A model generated the notes under the pieces. It searched no databases. It was not told the DNA's origin and saw only the letters and a program-made list of their open reading frames with translations. A program made the translations under genes and the position numbers. A stretch of 63,715 nucleotides of DNA, filler included, from Octopus bimaculoides (taxonomy: Eukaryota), in assembly GCF_001194135.2 (NCBI RefSeq). It is 4 parts of 4 records of this genome, joined end to end, with 100 filler letters (N's around TTAATTAATTAA, not from the genome) between each part and the next. Parts side by side here need not be neighbours in the genome. Positions count along the whole stretch, not along the records: positions 51,511 to 62,437 come from NC_068998.1; 3 more parts are not named here. The stretch is one strand, 5' to 3'. How positions within the stretch are numbered: the first letter of the stretch is position 1; the number at the start of each line of letters is the position of its first letter. Shown in pieces: positions 51,511 to 62,437 of this stretch.

Positions 51511-51554
<44 letters not shown>

Positions 51555-52299
51555 TACAGAACCTGATATACCAGGTAGGCATGTGTTCACCTCAAGTGAT
51601 GGCATCTGATTTATTACATACTTATACCTTCTAAATTAGTGACCTACTGCTGTGTGGGTGTGTCTGTGTGGAGGGTGAGGTGTCTCTGTGGGGATGCATG
51701 TGTATGTGGGTTTGGGCGTGCGCGCGCGTGTGTATGTGTGTGTAAGTGTAGATGTATGTGTGGGTGCGTGTGTGTGTGTATTTGTGTGTGCGTGTTGTGT
51801 GTGTATGTGTGTGTGTAATAATAGATTTAATTGTCAGAATATATTATGCAACGTCCCCCCATCCGCCCTTTATTTGAGGCTTTTATCTTCTCGTTACTCC
51901 CTAACTCCCCCCTAATCTTCTCTATAGTGCATTGATTTCATATATCTGTACCTTATCTTGTATCATTTATTAATTAATGACCAACCAATTATTAATTGAA
52001 ATAATCTTAAATATTTATTTAATTATGCGACTATCTACTCAATCACCCTCAAATTTATTTAATTATTTTAATCATATAATTTATTTATTTAGATAGATAG
52101 ATAATTACATATTTAATCATCCATTTATTTTATTGATTTAATCATTAGTTACTGTCTAAATTATCTATTTAATTAATTACTACTCATAGAATGGCCCATT
52201 ATAATAATGTTAGTGTTTTTCTTAAACGGACATTCATAATGAACCCGCCTCTAAATTATCTCTCTATAACAGGTAACTGCCACAGATATTAGGCACCTC

Positions 52300-52585
52300 C
52301 TCTACATCTTTTTTTCTCTTTTAGATTCCATGTCCAGAATGTAAGACATAGATGATCATATCCTGCCACAATTCTCTGTTCAGTTTTTTTTTTTTTTTTT
52401 TTTTTTCTGTGACAGTTCCACTTCCTTGTATTTAATACTTCTCTCTTTAAACCAGTTCAGGCTTGACTTCCAGATCATTCTTCTCCTTGCTCCGCTTCTT
52501 TTTCCTTTTAGTCTTTCCGGTCATTGCTAAAAAAATCTCCAGGCCTTCTTTCCTCATTACATGACCAGGAAATCTCAGTTGCTTG
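52300..52585 (-). mobile_element. LINE 3' ORF fragment (RTE-like, different family)
   Basis: EIRDKQLRFPGHVMRKEGLE.. and later WQDMIIYVLHSGHGI*. Confidence 0.6.
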
Positions 52586-52589
52586 TCTC

Positions 52590-52950
52590 TTATCTCACTT
52601 ATTCTATCGCTCTCTTTTGCCGAACCTCTAAGTTACGTCGACGTAAACACACCAATATCGGGTGTCAAANNNNNNNNNNGCATGTATGTGTGTAAACACA
52701 GACACACATACATACACACACATACACAGATATATATTTATATATATACATATATACGACGGAGTTCTTTCAGTTTCCGTCTACCAAATCCACTCACAAG
52801 TCTTTAGTAGACCAGAAGCTATAGTAGAAGACACTTGCCCAAAGTGCCACGCAGTGGGACTGAANNNNNNNNNNAGACACTTGCCCAAGGTGCCACGCAG
52901 TGGGACTGAACTCGGAACCATGTAACTGATAAGCAAGCTACTTACCACAA
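52590..52950 (-). mobile_element. tRNA-headed SINE (CpG retained), broken by two 10-N gaps
   Basis: TTCTTTCAGTTTCCGTCTACCAAATCCACTCACAAG..AGACACTTGCCCAAGGTGCCACGCAGTGGGACTGAAC. Confidence 0.8.
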
Positions 52951-53051
52951 AGGATATCCTGCTATATTTAATCGACATCATCTAAGGTAGCGGTCACACA
53001 CAGAAAGTTACAGCTATTGACACAGGACTTTTCTCCTCGAGACAGAATATA

Positions 53052-53889
53052 CAGGGTCTTCAAAAAGTTTCTCCGCAGAATAAATATTTGTAAGATGGTA
53101 TAATACTACAAAAGTATATATTAGACTTAACAAGACTTTAAAAAACTTTATAAGAGGTATTGAAAGTGTCGTCCTTCATTTTGAATACGTAAGTTGACTC
53201 TGTTACACATGTTTTGAAAGACATCTTGGAGAGTCTGACACGGTATGGATCGTGTGAAGGTTATGATTGTGTATTTTAGCTCATTAATGGTTTTCGGGCG
53301 ATTCTTGTACACTGATCCTTTACTTGCTCCCCAGAAAAAAAAAGTCTGGCGGTTTTAAATCAGGTGATCTTGGTGGCCAAAGTCCCTTCGAAATAATCCT
53401 TTCACCGAAAAACCCTTAAGAGCAACTTGACAAGAGCAACTTGACAAAAATATATATGGAGAGAACGTGTCAGAAAAATGTAGAGTCTGTGGAACTTGGA
53501 ACGAGACAGGGACACACATTGTGACAGAATGCCCCAAGTTGGCACAGGAAGAATATGAAAAATGGAGGCACGACCTGGTTGTAAAAGTTTTGCACTGGAA
53601 ACTGTGCCAGAAATGGAGATTTGAAGTTAGTCGAAGCTAGACAATCATCTAGTCGAAAGAGTACAGGAGTCGGAGAAATGTAAGATTTTGTGGGAATTTC
53701 TTATTCAAACGGACAAATGGTGATGCACGAAGAATGTGCTGTAGCTCCATCTTGCTGACAGGATGCATTATTAATTTCACTTTCAGTGAGTTGGCCTACA
53801 AATGGACAGACGATATTTGAGCAATATCTCTCGGTGTTGATGGTGTCTTCAAAACAATTCACTGCGGAAGAGACTTTTGGAACACCCTG
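53052..53889 (-). mobile_element. Internally deleted mariner (DD41D/rosa-like) element
   Basis: TA TSD and TIRs CAGGGTCTTCAAAAAGTTTCTCCGCAG / revcomp CAGGGTGTTCCAAAAGTCTCTTCCGCAG. Minus-strand FEDTINTERY..QQDGATAH and VFGERIISKGLWPPRSPDLKPPDFFFWG..FQNMCNRVNLRIQNEGRHFQYLL*. Confidence 0.9.
53446..53718 (+). mobile_element. Internal R4-like retrotransposon fragment (CCHC knuckle region) inside the mariner
   Basis: CRVCGTWNETGTHIVTECPKLAQEEYEKWRHDLVVKVLHWKLCQKW followed by a KILW(D)FLIQTDK-like segment. Confidence 0.75.
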
Positions 53890-54807
53890 TATAATAATAA
53901 TAATAATATTGAAAACTTACTTTTTCTTCCGTTCCTTATTAGCAACACATGACGTCTGCGTGCAAGTACATGTAGAGAGAGAAAAGAAAAAGAAGCGAGA
54001 TAGAGAATGGCACAGATTATAAGATTCTGTTGTTTTGTTACTGTCGAATATATATTTCTGTGACTATATCATTCCAGTGCTCAGATGCTGTATGATTAAA
54101 TCTTCTTCTAATTGCAACATTAGAAAGAATTGAAAAGTCAACAAAATAACCACAAAACAGAAAATGATTAAAGGTCAATCTTCAAGTGTATTAAACATTT
54201 AGATCACATTTAATTGATTAACTATTCCGTGATAGGAATATATACCACATTAATGATCTCGAAATAAGCACTTCTAAAGCATGCTTTATCTTTGATATGA
54301 GACGTAAGCTGCATGAGAACATAAACTATAGAGAACAAAGTAACTGAGTTCTTATTGAAACAAGATGAAACGTATTTCATATATATTTCCAATTCTTTTA
54401 CTCTTGTCTCTTATTTTACCTAATTTTGGCGCAACATTGGTCTTTTAGAATCATCGATTTCTCTTTGCCTAACGTTACAAAGTAATCTATCAAACGAAAT
54501 TATCATGATTCTCTAAATTTCTTTAGTTCCAATACAGAACTTATCTCATTAATCAACGCATGCTCTATGTTCCTTGCATACGATTCCCTTTGATTACTTT
54601 GGCGATTCTTTCTCACTAATTTTCGTCCGTTTCGTTTCTTAAGTCTCTTCGAGTTTATCTACATAATCAAAATTATAGAGAAGATATATATATAGTTAGT
54701 ACTCTGTCACGAAATATCATAAATGTGTGTGTGTGTGTAGAGTGAGAGATATAGAAAGATAGATAGATACACACACACACACATACATAACTATATGTAT
54801 ATGTGTA

Positions 54808-54859
<52 letters not shown>

Positions 54860-55399
54860 TGAATGCATTTGTTTTGCCAGATTCTTGGTGTGAAATTGGG
54901 TCTTGAAATAGATAGTGTTATATTCGGAGATAGTNNNNNNNNNNAATGCATTTGTTTTGACAGATTCTTGGTGTGAAATTGGGTCTTGAAATAGATAGTG
55001 TTATATTCGGAGATAGTCATTTTCCCCAGCCAATAGGATGTGTGTTTATTGATAAAAATGACCATCCCCACTGTGTGGCTGGTTCGGCAAGTTGACGTGT
55101 GTGTGTGTGTGTGTGTGTACGCGCGCGCGCGCCCCTGTGTGTGTATGTGAGTGAGTGTAATTGTCCAGCCATCAAAACTGGTAGTGTTTCTTGTTTCGTC
55201 TCTTTTTTATCTATAACTTTGTGGTTCGACAAGGTGCTCTCGATAAAATAAATACCAGATAGAACTAAGTACTTATATCAATAAGATCAACTAAACACAT
55301 GAGGTGGTGGTCTAGTATGGCCATAGGACAAAGACTTAAAGCAGTTAAAGAATATTACACACCCATACACATATGCATTCATACGTTACGAACACAGAG

Positions 55400-55860
55400 G
55401 CGCAGTCGTGACAAATGGCGTTAGCGGATTTGTAGGCAAGCGCTTTCTCTTCCTCCTGGTAAAAATTCTTCCACTTCATCGTCTTCGCAAACATTTGTGG
55501 GAACATAGGTCTGGATGATCATCTGGGTGGTATTTCTTGTGAGACGAATGTTTAGCACTCCGATGCGTGAAGAAGACAATCGGCAGGAAATGATTTTCGA
55601 GGCTTGTTCTTTGCTTACTCTCACACCTCTGCTTTTGCCAGTCTCATGACCCTTTCATCTGTCCATCTCACGTTTGTTTCTTTCTTTCGATGCGTTTTGC
55701 AGAACCTCGTCACATTACATTTGATCTTTTTCTCCCCCCNNNNNNNNNNGGAAAATACTTTCTGGTTTTCCTTGCCAAAGACCTGCAATTGTAGGTACAT
55801 ATTGCAACGGTTGTTATCCGTTTCCTTGGCGGCTAATGGATGTCTGAGATCCTTAGCAGA
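55400..55860 (-). mobile_element. RTE LINE AP-endonuclease fragment
   Basis: ICTYNCRSLAR.. and SSRIGVLNIRLTRNTTQMIIQTYVPTNVCEDDEVEEF. Confidence 0.7.
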
Positions 55861-55869
55861 TGTTAAGGT

Positions 55870-56570
55870 GCGGAGGTGAAGAGCTGTAGAAAATCCTCTT
55901 TCTACACTTCAATCACTATCTGAGGGAGGGCAAAAAAAAACCTCAATCTGGAATGTGTCCAATACCATCCTGTCTCATAAGAAGGGTGATGAAGATTTTA
56001 AGAATATCGACCCATATTTCTCTTGTCTCATCGCTATAAGCTGTTCGTCCTTACCAGACTACCGAAACCTCTCGGAAACGAGCAAACAGGTTTCCGTAAG
56101 AACTGCAGTACGATGGATCACATATTCACTGTAACACAGCTTATAGAACGAGCGAATGAATTGAATCTACCTCTGTGCATCGATTTAGTTGATTACGTAA
56201 AGGCCTTGGATAACATCGAGATGAACGTAGTGCTGAAACCTGTGGAAATGCCAGGTATCGAGTCGCAATGCATCAAATTAGACGCACCACAGATATAGTT
56301 CAGCTATCGCCACTAGGTAGAGCTCGAACTGGGAAAGGCTTCAAACTAAAAAGATACCATCTCCACGATGGTCTTCACAGCACGTCTGGAAGTGATCATC
56401 AGAGATAGTGACCAGACAGTGGGCATGAACATCAGCACACTTCCGAACATCCATAACAGAGCCGTTCTTCCATAGGTTCCAGAGAACAGGTGGACCCATG
56501 CAGTTGCCGGATGGTATCCAAGAGATCGGTAAAGGCTACTTTAAAGGCCTCTACGACGATGGGAAAATGA
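55870..56570 (+). mobile_element. RTE LINE RT fragment (heavily deleted)
   Basis: WNVSNTILSHKKGDEDFKN, EQTGFRKNCSTMDHIFTVTQLIERANELNLPLCIDLVDYVKALD and RWTHAVAGWYPRD..RPLRRW. Confidence 0.8.
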
Positions 56571-59119
56571 TTTAGCTACGTGATTTGGTACAAGATGGAA
56601 AAAAATGTTTCTGTCACGAAAGAATTGGAAGCGCATTGTGACCAGGGATATATAACATCTGATAGTCTGGTCGATACAGTGATATGTATATCTATGTATG
56701 TGTGTATGTATAAATAGAGAGGGAGAGAGAGGGGTGTAGGTATAAATATATCATACACACACACATACACATGTATCTATATATATATATTTATGCTTGA
56801 AGCTAAACCGTTCTAAAATTTTGACTTTCAAACAATAAAAGAAATGGATCAGGAGATCTTATAATTGCACACGAAATAAATTTTGTAATTAATTCATTTA
56901 TATAAAAATAATGTTGAATGTCCAAATAAACAACAAAAAACGTGCAAAAGTTTTATACAAACCAGTCCAAAGTTCAATGGCTAAGCATTTTGCAATCGCT
57001 CAGCTAAAAATTCCGATTTATAATGATTAAGATATTGAATGTAATATGCATACTAACAAAAGAAAATCTTGAGTTATTTAGAGCGTAAATTATTATGCAC
57101 TAATCTTTGCTCCAAAACTCATTCGTTTTCGCCAAGAATTATTTTCTTAATCGATGGTTCTGACGTCAAAATAATCATGCATGCAAGAATAATCACGTGT
57201 TGCTGTCTTTTGGATACTAATATATTAATGAAGTAGAGTGAGACCAATTATTTTGATTTTGTGATGGTTAGCCATAACTCTGGAGAAATTTGTAAATTTA
57301 TTGATCTTGTATTTTACATCTATTTCATAATAGTTTAATATTTACGAAGTGTGTTATACAGAGACAGTGGTCATACTATCCCACGGAATATGAATATTCA
57401 ACAGCAGAATAAAGTTAGGAATTAAAATTAATTATTTAAAGATGTTAGGAATTAAAAATTTAAGAACTTTTACCTAAAAATTATGCTTGACATAAATTTG
57501 CATATAATTATTTCTTTTAGATATTTCCTTATATTTATGGATAAATACGCAAAATTTAGAAAGCCAAATGAAAAGTTAAAGTTCAAAATATCTCTTCAAA
57601 CCTCCTGCTTACAGTTATTAATAAGAAATTCCTAAGACAATAATACGATACTCTTACTCAATATTTCATATGGTATTGCGTTGAAACACTAGATTTAAGG
57701 ATAAAATTAATCACATTAGTAATAATAGAGTTTTTACGTTTTGGCAAAAGCCAGCATTTGGGGGAGGGGGAAGCGATTAATAATAATGATAATGATAATC
57801 TATTGTGCTTATTTTCATGGCCTACCAATGTATACCAGGAATAACACCGAACCTGAGCCAAACCAAAATAATAATAAATGGTTATCTATACTGTGTCTCA
57901 TTTTGAAATTGGCTTAACCCCCAGAAATTGCCCATTATTATCTTTCAAACTTGTTTATCGTACGAAAATATTTACAGATGATAACCTAGTTTATTCTGGT
58001 TAAATTGATTTGAATGCAAATCCTTTTAAGCTATGTTTCGATCAGTAACAATAATCTTTCATAAAATATGGATGGTTGTCAGACACAAACTTTCAAATTA
58101 TATCTGGATTTTAAGAATTAATATCAAGACCTATAAAATTGTTTGTAAGACACTGACATAGGCTAAACCTTATAAACAAGATAACGATGGTCGTATTTCT
58201 GAAAAGCTGAATATTTTATTCCATAAGAATGTTATCATAGGCACATGTTTAGAACTAATATATTAAATATAGACCTCTTATAAATTTTGTCATCATAAAT
58301 CAAAATATTTGCTATAATATTTTAATGACTTATATAGTTGAATGCCGAATATAATACTTTGTACTACAAATAAGTCACTAGTGTCTTCTGTTAGTGTATA
58401 TAGAGCATTCAATATTTTAATCGTTTAAATAAAAATGTGTATGATTCTATTGCACGGATTTCTATCATTAATGTGGAAATTTCCACTTTTATTTAATTTT
58501 TTATATACAAATATAAGTTTGATTTACCTTTTCGTTGAAAAATCAGCAGACAGGAAACTCTTAACGATTTTCGCAATTTGTGGATTTCCAGCTTTTATTA
58601 GATTTTTTTCTGGATGTAAATATTATAAATACGTTTCATGTGTGGTTAATAGTCACAAAATTTGTAACCATATTAAATAATACCTCATTTCAGATGTATG
58701 TTTCAAATACGACCAGTGAAAGTCTTATTTATTGTGAAAATAGCAGCCGTTCTAATGCTTCCTATAGATTATAATCTTCAGCAGTGTCACTCCACGACAA
58801 TCTATTTCTCACCAAAGGGTAGACATATAGCACATAACACTCACTGGCATTAAATGTAGTCCTATTTCTTTTTTCTAACACAAGTTTCGACTGAACTACG
58901 AAGCGCTTTTTCCGTCTTTTACTCTCGTAGTTTTCCCGATATCACAACATGTACAGCGTCTCTCATAACAAGCGGTCAGTTGATGAAGACACAGCATGCT
59001 TAAACCAGCATTGTTGGTGGACAATAACGAAAATGCTCTAATAGTGTCCACTGGAAAACAGCCACTGTATAAACAGACCATTTAACTAAAATATACAACA
59101 GTACACGTAGACATCTTTT

Positions 59120-59510
59120 TATCTTTTCTTCTTTTACTTGTTTCAGTCATTAGACTGTCGCCATGCTGGGGCACCGCCTTGAAGAATTTTTGGTCGAATG
59201 AATCGACACCAGTCGTTTTTTTTTTAAATTTAAACTTGATAGTTATTCTATCAGTCTTTTTTGCCGAACCGCTAGGTTACAGGAACGTAAACACACCGAC
59301 ACCGGTTGTCAAGCGCTGGTAGGAGACAAACACAGACACACACGTGTGTTATATATATATATATATATGATGAGCTTCTTTCAGTTTCCGTCTACTTAAA
59401 GCACTAACAAGGCTTTGGTCAGTCATAGAAGACGCTTGCCAAGTTTCCACGCAGTGGGACTGAAACCGGAACCAAGTAGCTGGGAAGCAAACTTCTTACC
59501 ACACAGCTAC
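59120..59510 (-). mobile_element. tRNA-headed SINE, tail A, CpG retained
   Basis: TTTCAGTCATTAGACTGTCGCCATGCTGGGGCACCGCC..GCCGAACCGCTAGGTTAC..TTCTTACCACACAGCTAC. Confidence 0.85.
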
Positions 59511-59898
59511 GTCTGCAAAATATACAGAAGTATTCGTCCTGTTTTTATAGCTTAGTCAGAGAAAGGAGAGCCAGGTCTATAGTGTCTCTAAGATTGTTAG
59601 GAGAAATGGAAATAAGAAATTATGTCTTGAGGGTCCCCATAAACTACAATCCGGGTCTGAATGCTTGTAAAGGGTGGAGTCTGATAAAGGCATCATCCAA
59701 GGTCATGTGATGGCGTTAAACTGAATAATGGCTTGAATCTACGTTTCAAGGAGTACCAACTTACACGCGACTTAACGATTTTGACGATTTTGTTTAAGAA
59801 AGCCTTAGTAAATATTATTTTACGCATGCGCAAATATATATATATATTAGGAAAGATCAAAAAGACCTCCGTTGTTATAAAAAAAAGGAGTACTATTA

Positions 59899-59946
<48 letters not shown>

Positions 59947-60510
59947 GTTACAAAACACTGACGCTATATAGAACCAACCGAACCAATGTCTTGTTAAGTA
60001 GCGCCTTCTAACCAGTTGTTTGATGCTTATATATAGGAAAGCATCAGGAAATATGTTTTTGCGTATTTCGCTAACGTGTGTGTGCGTGTGTGTGTGTTTT
60101 ATTTGACAAGTTCGAAGACGAACGAAAGCGCTAATAATAATGGCGAAATAAAAAAAATTGTTTTTTTAAAATTCTGGCGACCTCCTTTTTTCTCAATATT
60201 CAATATCTGTATACCATTTCTAACACTCTATGCACACAGCCACATATGAATATATATAGATATACACACAAACTTCTTACCAGTTCATTTATGCTTGGGA
60301 CATATTAGAACCCGTATGAAAGCCATTCAGTGTATTTTGTCATGGAGAAATTTTCACATTTGCGCTGTCACCCCATAATATATCGTTTCATAACACATCC
60401 TTCTGATATATAGATAGATACAAAAGAAAAAACTATTTGTGGTGATACAAACAAAGGGAAGACAACTCAAATAATCCTCTTCTCTCTTTTTCTTTTCTTT
60501 CTGTGTCCAG

Positions 60511-60656
60511 TTACAAGACGCTGAAAATGTCTATTATCAACCAAACGAAGAAAGAAAGTTGACTGTTCATATTGAATGGATTGGTTCTTGTTTATTAGTT
60601 CGACCGACTTACCATACGATTGATGACGTCAGCAGAGTACACAAGCACCAGATGTT
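60511..60656 (+). CDS. Candidate internal exon, product unknown
   Basis: Long polypyrimidine tract ending ctgtgtccAG and donor GTAAGT. The 146 bp are open in phase 0-to-2: LQDAENVYYQPNEERKLTVHIEWIGSCLLVRPTYHTIDDVSRVHKHQM(L). Confidence 0.4.
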
Positions 60657-60878
60657 GTAAGTATTTATATAATATTTATCACCGTAGTTTCACTGTGTAT
60701 GCGTTGTGCTTCGCGGCTAATAACCTCACCTACGTATATTCAGCTCCCAAGACGTTAGACGCCAATGTCTCTGTAACACGCCAGTTACGTGTTTGTTGAT
60801 TACATGAGTGTTCCTTCTAATATCTCAGAAATTGCCAAAATTACAAAGTCAACATTTGTATTAATATTTACTAAGATA

Positions 60879-61322
60879 AAGGCGGTGAGCTGACAGAAAC
60901 GTTAGCACGCCGGGCGAAATGCTTAGCGGTATNNNNNNNNNNTTTATGTTCTGAGTTCAAATTCCGCCGAGGTCGACTTTGCTTTTCACCCTTTCGGGTT
61001 CAATAAATTAAGTACCAGTTGCGTATTGGGATCGATCTAATCGACTGGCCCCCTCCCCCCAAAATTTCGAGTCTTTTGTCTAGAGTAGAAAAGAAAGGCG
61101 GTGAGCTAGCAGAAATGTTAGCACGCCGGACGAAATGCTTAGCGGTATTTCGTCCGTCTTTATGTTCTGAGTTGAAATTCCGCCGAGGTCGACTTTGCCT
61201 TTCATCCTTTCAGGGTCGATAAAATAAGTACCAGTTACACACTGGGGTCGATGTAATCGACTTAATCCCTTTGTTTGTCCCCTCTATGTTTAGCCCCCTG
61301 TGGGCAATAAATAAATAAATAA
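60879..61322 (+). mobile_element. Two tandem OK-like tRNA-derived SINEs, well preserved
   Basis: GGCGGTGAGCT..GTTAGCACGCCGG..GAGTTCAAATTCCGCCGAGGTCGACTTTGC (A/B-box-like head). The second copy ends in (AAAT)n. Confidence 0.88.
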
Positions 61323-61750
61323 ATGTTTACGTTTTCTTCGTTTAGTTTTCATTCTATAAACATCAAAAACATCAAACTGTATACGTGACCGAGTATGGTA
61401 TACATTTTAAGTGACTTAATGAATATCAAATACACATTGCTTTAGAAGTGTATTATTAGAATCTATTTAATACAATGTTAAAAATTTTTTTTCATAGTTT
61501 ATGTCGTATTTTAAGTAGAAGTTTAAGCTTTGTCCAGAAAATCCTGATATCCGGGACACTTCTGGTCTCAAGCTTCCAGAATATTTGATCCAGTACCAAA
61601 CTCAAAACGTGACTTCAGTAACACGGGCAGCTACACTACATAGCAATTATAACGTGGAAACGGCGCAATGTTTAAGTAGTAATGATGATAGAGAGCTCAA
61701 CTCTATGCGCGCTCGCGAGTGTGTGTGCGTACATACGTGTAGTGACTTAC

Positions 61751-61865
61751 ATTTGACAGGCTGCGCCGCACAAGAACGTCCAGAACCTCTCAACGTTGGC
61801 TTCACAAGCTTTCACGCAGTCGCCGCCCAGATGCAGACCTTTGATGTGCTGAATTACATCGCCGA
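61751..61865 (-). CDS. Exon encoding a small Cys-rich peptide segment with a C-X3-C-X11-C-X3-C motif
   Basis: Acceptor gctttttttccaatttcttttacAG and donor AT|GTAAGT. The 115 bp are GC-rich, and only the phase-1 frame is open: (x)GDVIQHIKGLHLGGDCVKACEANVERFWTFLCGAACQ(I/M). Confidence 0.75.
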
Positions 61866-62099
61866 CTGTAAAAGAAATTGGAAAAAAAGCAGTGTTGAAT
61901 AGTGATGTTTGCAATGTTGAATATTAATATAAGCACAAGAATTTCACACATTTATGAGGAAGAATACAGTCCGGGAGATGAATAAAGGCACGAAAACCAG
62001 CAATACGTATTTTGTCTTACATATTTAATGAAGTGCGTAACGTTGAGAAGTATAATTAATAGACAGAATATATCTATATCATGTTGATATTTATTGTGG

Positions 62100-62437
62100 G
62101 TGGAGGCGCAATGGTTAGGGCAGCGGACTCGCGGTCATAGGATCGCGGTTTCGATTCCCAGACCGGGCGTTGTGAGTGTTTATTGAGCGAAAACACCTAA
62201 AGCTCCGATGGTGGCGAACCCTGCTGTACTCTTCCACCACAACTTTCTCTCACTCTTTCTTCCTGTTTCTGTTGTGCCTGTAATTCAAAGGGTCAGCCTT
62301 GTCACACTGTGTCACGCTGAATCTCCCCAAGAACTACGTTAAGGGTACACGTGTCTGTGGAGTGCTCAGCCACTTGCACGTTAATTTCACGAGCAGGCTG
62401 TTCCGTTGATCGGATCAACTGGAACCCTCGACGTCGT
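62100..62437 (+). mobile_element. tRNA-derived SINE with intact B box
   Basis: GGAGGCGCAATGGTTAGGGCAGCGGACTCGCGGTC..GGTTTCGATTCCCAGACCGGGCG head. The tail is homologous to 43170-43500. Confidence 0.8.

Follow-up and report, generated by a model that had tools for sequence, protein, structure and literature searches.

Cystine-stabilised alpha/alpha (CS-alpha/alpha) peptides are defined by the cysteine motif C1X3C2XnC3X3C4, by disulfides of the I-IV/II-III type and by a helical hairpin (PMC7191063, PMC4278219). The animal toxins of this class have 22-27 residues, the known kappa-KTx blockers rely on a dyad that contains a lysine, and the plant alpha-hairpinins, which have the same motif, are defence peptides (PMC7191063). 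We describe here an exon of 115 nucleotides (nt) in Octopus bimaculoides whose product has this cysteine motif. It lies on the minus strand, at 61865-61751, of a stretch of 63,715 nt, filler included, that was joined from four parts of assembly GCF_001194135.2 (the window), and within the part of it that comes from NC_068998.1 (positions 51,511 to 62,437; hereafter the piece). These 115 bases form a genuine coding exon and not a chance open reading frame (ORF). It is very probably the mature-peptide exon of a gene encoding a secreted prepropeptide, in a family restricted to octopods, and the gene to which it belongs is a previously unannotated member of that family.

An earlier note, made from this DNA alone, had seen here an exon with a single open frame, a start in phase 1 and the cysteine spacing C-X3-C-X11-C-X3-C. 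Our reading of the minus strand confirmed all three, and the coordinates of the two readings are exactly the same. Directly 5' of the exon stands ttttttccaatttcttttacAG, and directly 3' of it GTAAGT. The sole open frame runs xTC GGC GAT ... TGT CAA AT up to the exon end and encodes (F/L/I/V)GDVIQHIKGLHLGGDCVKACEANVERFWTFLCGAACQ(I/M), so that the exon is entered after a phase-1 intron and left before a phase-2 intron. Its GC content, 0.54, exceeds that of the 500-nt flanks (0.42 and 0.35). The features of the exon and of its boundaries are the following:

61751..61865, minus strand: coding exon 2, very probably the mature-peptide exon, from its sequence, its homology, and the 115-nt length, boundaries and phases common to 7 relatives
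61866..61887, minus strand: 3' splice site of intron 1, with the polypyrimidine tract ttttttccaatttcttttac and then AG (61867-61866)
61745..61750, minus strand: 5' splice site of intron 2, GTAAGT; the intron opens GTAAGTCACTA, as in the Argonauta gene
61816..61818, minus strand: Cys1 codon TGC, which opens the first CX3C; invariant column in family alignments
61804..61806, minus strand: Cys2 codon TGT; invariant column in family alignments
61768..61770, minus strand: Cys3 codon TGC, which opens the second CX3C; invariant column in family alignments
61756..61758, minus strand: Cys4 codon TGT; invariant column in family alignments

Homology searches link the exon to small octopod precursors. With phmmer, 1.84 billion cluster representatives yielded three of them (E = 1.3e-8, 3.5e-7 and 5.7e-5), namely one hypothetical protein of Argonauta hians and two uncharacterised proteins of O. 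bimaculoides. Two profile searches then enlarged this set, and the paralogue search that the earlier note had proposed found octopod relatives by both routes. A plant NLR (P0003) that also appeared in the phmmer output was a leucine-rich-repeat artefact. When the O. vulgaris protein P0007 was compared with the piece by tblastn, it matched this frame alone (E = 1.9e-15). Similarly, a family hidden Markov model (HMM) built without the window sequence scored the frame at 60.0 bits (E = 4e-18), and the runner-up among the 375 stop-to-stop fragments of the piece at 5.4 bits. With P0007 the window peptide has 70% identity, and with the Argonauta protein 62%; its closest relatives over the exon are O. 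vulgaris CAI9736013.1/CAI9736012.1 (70% identity), and no listed relative is identical to it. It retains all 11 invariant columns of a nine-sequence alignment, i.e., the four cysteines and L, L, A, F, W, F and A, and has in common with its relatives the conserved core L..L...C..AC......FW.F.C..AC. The exon peptide had no match in a Pfam scan and found no chain in a PDB sequence search, both at E up to 10.

The genes of the relatives are organised in the same way. We examined five loci, four from the chromosome-level assembly of O. vulgaris and one from Argonauta, which hold seven gene copies in total, all of them with three coding exons. Exon 1, which encodes the signal peptide and the acidic spacer, ends in ...DKR(L/F/I)S and 1 further nt before a GTAAGT donor, and therefore in phase 1, which is precisely what the earlier note had expected of a signal-peptide exon upstream. 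Exon 2 is exactly 115 nt long, from AG to GTAAG and with phases 1 and 2, in every one of the seven copies as well as in the window, and it codes for nearly the whole mature peptide. The intron flanks of the window exon, too, can be aligned with those of the P0007 gene: window 61719-61978 and L005 14492-14242 have 75.5% identity over 261 nt, and the identity is 75-80% over 150 nt on each side (74.5% for the 150 nt upstream). Exon 3 consists of 1 nt and 5-10 codons, a stop codon and a short 3' untranslated region (UTR). Intron 1 spans 0.84-4.6 kb and intron 2 typically 0.65-1.4 kb. Several family genes (in loci L001, L002 and L005) have an acceptor-like sequence, ...ttttcAG followed by AC(ATG), right before the start codon, and an annotated O. 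vulgaris isoform, P0011, has four extra N-terminal residues (MHFN-MKLV...). These two observations suggest that family genes may have an additional 5' exon, either non-coding or alternative.

Compared with the Argonauta exon, the window exon shows purifying selection, and its coding capacity has been maintained: the ratio of nonsynonymous to synonymous substitution rates (dN/dS) between the two exons is 0.14, with 17 nonsynonymous and 15 synonymous changes for an expected nonsynonymous fraction of 0.80 (binomial p 7e-4). The comparison with P0007 gave a dN/dS of 0.34 (p 0.08), and long-term values were in the range 0.08-0.14. The maintenance of coding capacity speaks against an exon that has long been dead. 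It also speaks against runaway diversification of the venom type over the long term.

The family includes six members in O. bimaculoides (A0A0L8GWF1, A0A0L8GVS8, A0A0L8FGZ6, A0A0L8GV61, A0A0L8IA49 and A0A0L8GVL7), four member genes in O. vulgaris (CAI9736012/13, CAI9736016, CAI9736017 and CAI9726847) and one member in A. hians (GAB1605707.1). Every one of these entries is named only "uncharacterized" or "hypothetical". The family is lineage-restricted and uncharacterised, but it is already in the databases as unnamed hypothetical proteins, and it is therefore not a new kind of thing. No Pfam family is assigned to its members, and we found neither a structure nor a paper describing them. No mention of the accessions or of characteristic sequence strings was found in the literature, and topic searches on octopus neuropeptide precursors, salivary gland peptides and lineage-specific secreted peptides found no description of the family. 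Among the 3069 candidates of the profile search, none from outside octopods reached an E of 10 or better, and the family appears so far in incirrate octopods only (Octopus and Argonauta). Within this range, orthologues of O. vulgaris and O. bimaculoides can be recognised in pairs, and the Argonauta protein is a clear family member.

The precursors have a simple architecture. Full-length members are 74-76 residues long and start with MK, a hydrophobic core of ~13 residues and then small residues, (A/S)(A/S). As far as can be judged by eye from the sequences, which is how we assessed signal peptides, this N-terminus is a classical cleavable signal peptide. It is followed by a pro-piece in the form of a short acidic spacer, (S)(L)YDEE(I)DKR, which ends in DKR or DKK, and by a predicted mature peptide of 45-49 residues with four cysteines. 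The mature peptide is made, in this order, of a short helix (..D.I.H...L), DLSGG, the first CX3C, 11 residues with FW.F, the second CX3C and a tail. The tail consists of [IVLF][ILV][LKR] and 2-7 further residues, often rich in glycine, and in several members it ends in G or GK. Mature peptides are acidic in 9 of the 11 full-length relatives (pI 4.0-5.0) and basic in one copy only; their grand average of hydropathicity ranges from ~-0.2 to +0.6 and is positive in 9 of the 11. The earlier note had read the exon as the mature region of a small secreted precursor, and this fits all full-length relatives, each with its signal peptide and its spacer ending in DKR or DKK.

One of the O. bimaculoides gene models, that of A0A0L8GVL7 (P0010), is frame-shifted. 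It follows the wrong frame from the end of VIDVINHIRQ onwards, through what is left of exon 2 and through exon 3, such that SGRSCVAQPVK stands for FWTFLCGAACK and LSWAKET for IILGKGD in the correct frame. When read correctly, this gene probably encodes the orthologue of O. vulgaris P0007.

To obtain a structural model we ran AlphaFold2 on the 37-residue exon peptide with the nine-sequence alignment. The model has helices at residues 3-9, 16-23 and 26-36, with a mean predicted local distance difference test score (pLDDT) of 75, and the second and third helices are predicted to carry one CX3C each. This arrangement fits the helix-loop-helix that the earlier note had in mind. The model of the full P0007 precursor showed the same helices and, in addition, that of the signal peptide, with low confidence (pLDDT 59.5).

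These data suggest how the peptide might be made. The precursor would enter the secretory pathway, where signal peptidase would remove the signal peptide and an enzyme of the furin or prohormone-convertase type would cut after KR, freeing a peptide of 45-49 residues; some members might also undergo C-terminal trimming or amidation. The two CX3C motifs, on consecutive helices and probably cross-linked by two disulfides, would form a stapled helical hairpin with a third, short helix on its N-terminal side. The released peptide would then act outside the cell. We infer the processing route from the precursor architecture together with general knowledge of the secretory pathway, and we also infer the disulfide pairing and, for this copy, its secretion, expression and function.

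How close is this to the CS-alpha/alpha peptides? Like kappa-hefutoxin 1, OmTx, vil14a, flf14a-c and the alpha-hairpinins, the octopod peptides have the motif C1X3C2XnC3X3C4, are small and secreted, and are modelled as a helix-loop-helix with one CX3C per helix. Unlike them, they are about twice as long (45-49 vs 22-27 residues), add an N-terminal helix and a hydrophobic C-terminal tail, and are mostly acidic instead of basic. We detected no homology to CS-alpha/alpha peptides, be it in PDB, searched with the peptide and with the family profile, or in Pfam, searched with 11 members, where the Conotoxin family gave an insignificant match to one of the 11 (E 0.19). The earlier note had warned that shared cysteine spacing does not prove homology. 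The 11-residue spacer that it gave for flf14a and vil14a was not confirmed, as PMC7191063 and PMC4278219 give the general motif and the I-IV/II-III pairing only. With the motif and the predicted helices on one side, and the length, the extra helix, the hydrophobic tail, the acidity and the lack of sequence relationship on the other, it is plausible that the octopod peptide works like a CS-alpha/alpha hairpin, but its membership in the known CS-alpha/alpha families is not supported. The resemblance is most economically put down to convergence on a simple scaffold.

Two other systems have similar patterns of cysteines. The small Tims (Tim8/9/10/13, zf-Tim10_DDP) also have twin CX3C motifs on two helices, but the octopod proteins differ from them by the secretory signal, by the dibasic site and by having genes in clusters of closely spaced paralogues. 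The cysteine-rich domain (CRD) of Drosophila Grindelwald (PDB 6zsy_A 27-49, PCIEVCNNQTHNYDAFLCAKECS) has the identical cysteine spacing and, like the octopod peptides, FLC before Cys3. It was the only PDB match of the family profile (positions 45-67), with a non-significant E of 3, and it is therefore a curiosity and not evidence. In contrast to the octopod secreted precursors of 75 residues, Grindelwald is a membrane receptor.

Several roles could be served by a family of secreted octopod peptides. We rank first an endogenous signalling ligand, akin to a neuropeptide, a hormone or a pheromone, because of the long-term constraint, of the recognisable orthologue pairs together with the Argonauta member, and of the acidity of the peptides; this role has, in our view, close to an even chance, if somewhat short of it. 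The acidity of most mature peptides, which sets them apart from cationic antimicrobial peptides and from basic K-channel blockers, and the purifying selection also mean that a toxin or defence role, which the earlier note had raised for this peptide, is unsupported and not favoured. A role outside signalling, salivary or venom action, and antimicrobial or defence activity is rather unlikely.

The possibility that we rank second is a venom toxin of the CS-alpha/alpha type in the saliva: the posterior salivary gland would make it, and it would block or modulate ion channels of the prey, in the way of kappa-hefutoxins and of the conotoxins vil14a and flf14a. Its rank is due to the scaffold, to the multigene clustering and to the lineage, since octopods are venomous. 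The motif C1X3C2XnC3X3C4 is the one seen in CS-alpha/alpha peptides, with each CX3C on a predicted helix, and the genes form a clustered family in which the signal and pro-region are nearly invariant and the mature region is more variable. Two young pairs of O. vulgaris duplicates even have dN/dS values above 2 (2.4 and 2.7), but these rest on 9-11 substitutions in each pair (p ~0.7), so the excess is not significant and we do not claim positive selection. Furthermore, the long-term values given above are unusually constrained for venom peptides, no sequence homology links the family to any solved CS-alpha/alpha peptide, and the mature peptides, with their 45-49 instead of 22-27 residues, are mostly acidic, whereas kappa-KTx blockers need a lysine dyad. 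We consider this toxin reading rather unlikely.

Some observations weigh against reading the window exon as part of a working family gene, or against the picture of the family given above. The structure models are only moderately confident, and Foldseek searches of PDB with both of them gave no match, as is common for very short chains. The restriction to octopods rests on sequence searches, whose sensitivity is limited for a protein of 75 residues. The 42-residue ORF, used as query in a word-index search, had no match among 5.8 billion proteins, so the exact exon product is in no protein of that collection. At the nucleotide level the exon is no better conserved than its intron flanks when compared with the P0007 gene (78% vs 75-80%). 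Finally, the two other exons of the gene are not visible in the piece: tblastn and HMM scans found no exon-1-like sequence in it, and no exon 3 was identified in the 10.2 kb downstream of the exon. With exon 1 outside the piece and exon 3 not found, this copy could be incomplete or a pseudogene. The features that bear on the missing exons are these:

61866..62437, minus strand: 3' portion of intron 1, truncated where the piece ends; 572 nt upstream of the exon
60511..60520, minus strand: tentative start of exon 3, low confidence; acceptor ...cattttcAG followed by CGTCTTGTAA, giving ...CQIVL and a stop codon
59082..59085, minus strand: start of exon 3 proposed by the earlier note, low confidence; acceptor ...gtatattttAG followed by TTAA, giving ...CQI and a stop codon

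Since intron 1 of the relatives spans 0.84-4.6 kb, the 572 nt available upstream should be too short to reach exon 1 of the window gene. The scans picked up two weak resemblances to exon 1, at 62018-61965 and 58300-58274 (E 0.26-0.8); these have no methionine and no complete signal, and were put down to chance. As for exon 3, motif searches, blastn-short and Smith-Waterman alignments with exon 3 and UTR of five relatives gave nothing above the shuffled null, and a scan of acceptors for a long in-phase exon downstream gave junk ORFs only. This exon is easy to miss, because in the relatives it has only ~20-30 coding nt and is poorly conserved. The acceptor at 60520 would end the protein with CQIVL, which fits the [IV][ILV]L that the family has after the last Cys-x, and would give an intron 2 of ~1.23 kb, a length inside the typical family range, with the nearest AATAAA at 60103. 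It remains a candidate, because it has no significant DNA similarity to exon 3 of the relatives. The 3' end put forward in the earlier note does have a usable AG at 59085 and the AATAAA at 58733-58728, but its protein ending in CQI is not supported: all relatives run 5-10 residues further, no family member ends in this way, and nothing near 59085 resembles their last exon.

Could this copy then be a dead or orphan exon, left as a pseudogene fragment by tandem duplication in a family that is itself functional? To the absence of exons 1 and 3 from the piece and the similar nucleotide identity of exon and flanks to P0007 one may add that its product is in no annotation searched and that intron 2 is littered with repeats and with a reverse-transcriptase relic. 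Yet the frame is open, both splice sites are consensus and stand at conserved positions, all four cysteines and every invariant column are kept, and dN/dS is below 1. Moreover, exon 1 is expected beyond the available 572 nt, and exon 3 is short and easily missed. We regard a dead copy as improbable.

The antimicrobial or defence peptide, acting in skin, mucus or haemocytes, is ranked third among the roles on account of charge, as 9 of the 11 full-length relatives are anionic (net charge -1 to -5, pI 4.0-6.0) and a single copy is basic. A small, secreted, disulfide-stabilised peptide from a family that expanded within the octopod lineage might serve in defence, as do the alpha-hairpinins with the same motif. 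However, we found no homology to alpha-hairpinins, and the N-terminal helix, which the earlier note had described as amphipathic, is not significantly so (hydrophobic moment 0.35, equalled by 32% of shuffles). Such a role is quite improbable.

The least probable of all alternatives is an intracellular twin-CX3C small Tim, or a cysteine-rich receptor module such as the TNF-receptor-like CRD of Grindelwald, since a spacer within the small-Tim range, which includes 11 residues, and a sole PDB profile match with identical cysteine spacing but E = 3 stand against the absence of any Tim10/DDP or TNFR match in Pfam, for the exon or for the 11 members (E up to 10), and against relatives that carry a secretory signal and are already full-length at 74-76 residues, lacking a transmembrane segment and any other domain. 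The lack of profile match and the secretory signal effectively refute the small-Tim reading. More generally, the lack of a Pfam match, the signal peptide and the absence of a further domain exclude, for the family, the large protein, the small Tim and the receptor domain that the earlier note had listed as outcomes that would overturn its proposal.

If the window exon is, as we favour, the mature-peptide exon of a secreted octopod prepropeptide, a more far-reaching possibility can be tentatively proposed. The family might be an octopod invention, a new class of three-helix peptides stapled by two disulfides that arose independently of the CS-alpha/alpha peptides of scorpions, cone snails and plants, and that serves either octopod-specific signalling, as a hormone, a neuropeptide or a waterborne or contact pheromone with a receptor of its own, or a new pharmacology of saliva peptides; the window would then contribute a paralogue not annotated before. 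To our knowledge, characterised lineage-specific secreted peptides of cephalopods are few. Known components of octopus saliva are mostly enzymes, tachykinins or large proteins, and the twin-CX3C two-helix scaffold is pharmacologically useful in other phyla. In any case the family offers an entry point, made of clustered, octopod-restricted genes for four-cysteine peptides of ~47 residues with a textbook prepropeptide architecture. The analysis also flags gaps in annotation: the window exon, two apparently unannotated O. vulgaris copies and the frame-shifted O. bimaculoides model. Should the peptides turn out to have minor effects only, as ordinary secreted peptides confined to certain tissues, this would be a routine family annotation.

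The clustering of the family is best seen in O. vulgaris, where three copies lie within 25 kb in locus L005 (OX597831.1). Two further copies lie ~0.3 Mb away on the same chromosome, ~35 kb from each other, and one copy is on another chromosome. Two of the three copies in L005 are on the opposite strand and were not among the proteins returned by the searches; they flank the P0007 gene:

L005 6587-4700, minus strand: family gene flanking the P0007 gene in O. vulgaris OX597831.1
L005 21310-18700, minus strand: family gene flanking the P0007 gene in O. vulgaris OX597831.1

Both are possibly unannotated in the O. vulgaris assembly. One of them encodes MKVVLLFLVLLPIVFAASPYDEEIDKRMDLNDLIRHLQNLDLSEGCEKVCHKEVPLFPDFFCKAACQFIKTTGSGK and the other a close paralogue with the C-terminus ...CRFIRATGGGK. 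They belong to a subgroup in which the FW motif has been lost and the last residues are GK, with A0A0L8GV61 as its O. bimaculoides orthologue, and this GK end might be an amidation signal.

The piece also holds repeats. At 60872-61321, inside intron 2, stand two adjacent copies of a dispersed repeat (~60876-61046 and 61095-61317), which is found at many sites of the O. vulgaris loci L001, L003 and L005 with 80-87% identity and looks like a short interspersed element (SINE). A second interspersed repeat, at 59113-59519, recurs at several places in L001, L003 and L004 with 67-76% identity. On the plus strand, an ORF fragment at 56023-56298 has a weak match to RVT_1 (E 0.0079, below the Pfam cut-off) and an ORF at 53467-53640 resembles by eye the C-terminus of ORF2 of long interspersed elements, with no Pfam match. 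Both are probably pieces of decayed retrotransposons lacking long terminal repeats. On reading, the region 62100-62437 on the minus strand resembled a tRNA-derived SINE; ARAGORN finds no tRNA-like structure there, nor any tRNA-like sequence elsewhere in the piece. Within this region, only 62104-62196 and 62382-62429 match O. vulgaris L003 (73-88%). Short runs of N add up to 50 in the piece. Microsatellites of the dinucleotides CA and GA, (CA)n and (GA)n, occupy 51511-51570, 55097-55158 and 59896-59949, and give hundreds of spurious BLAST matches to every octopod locus.

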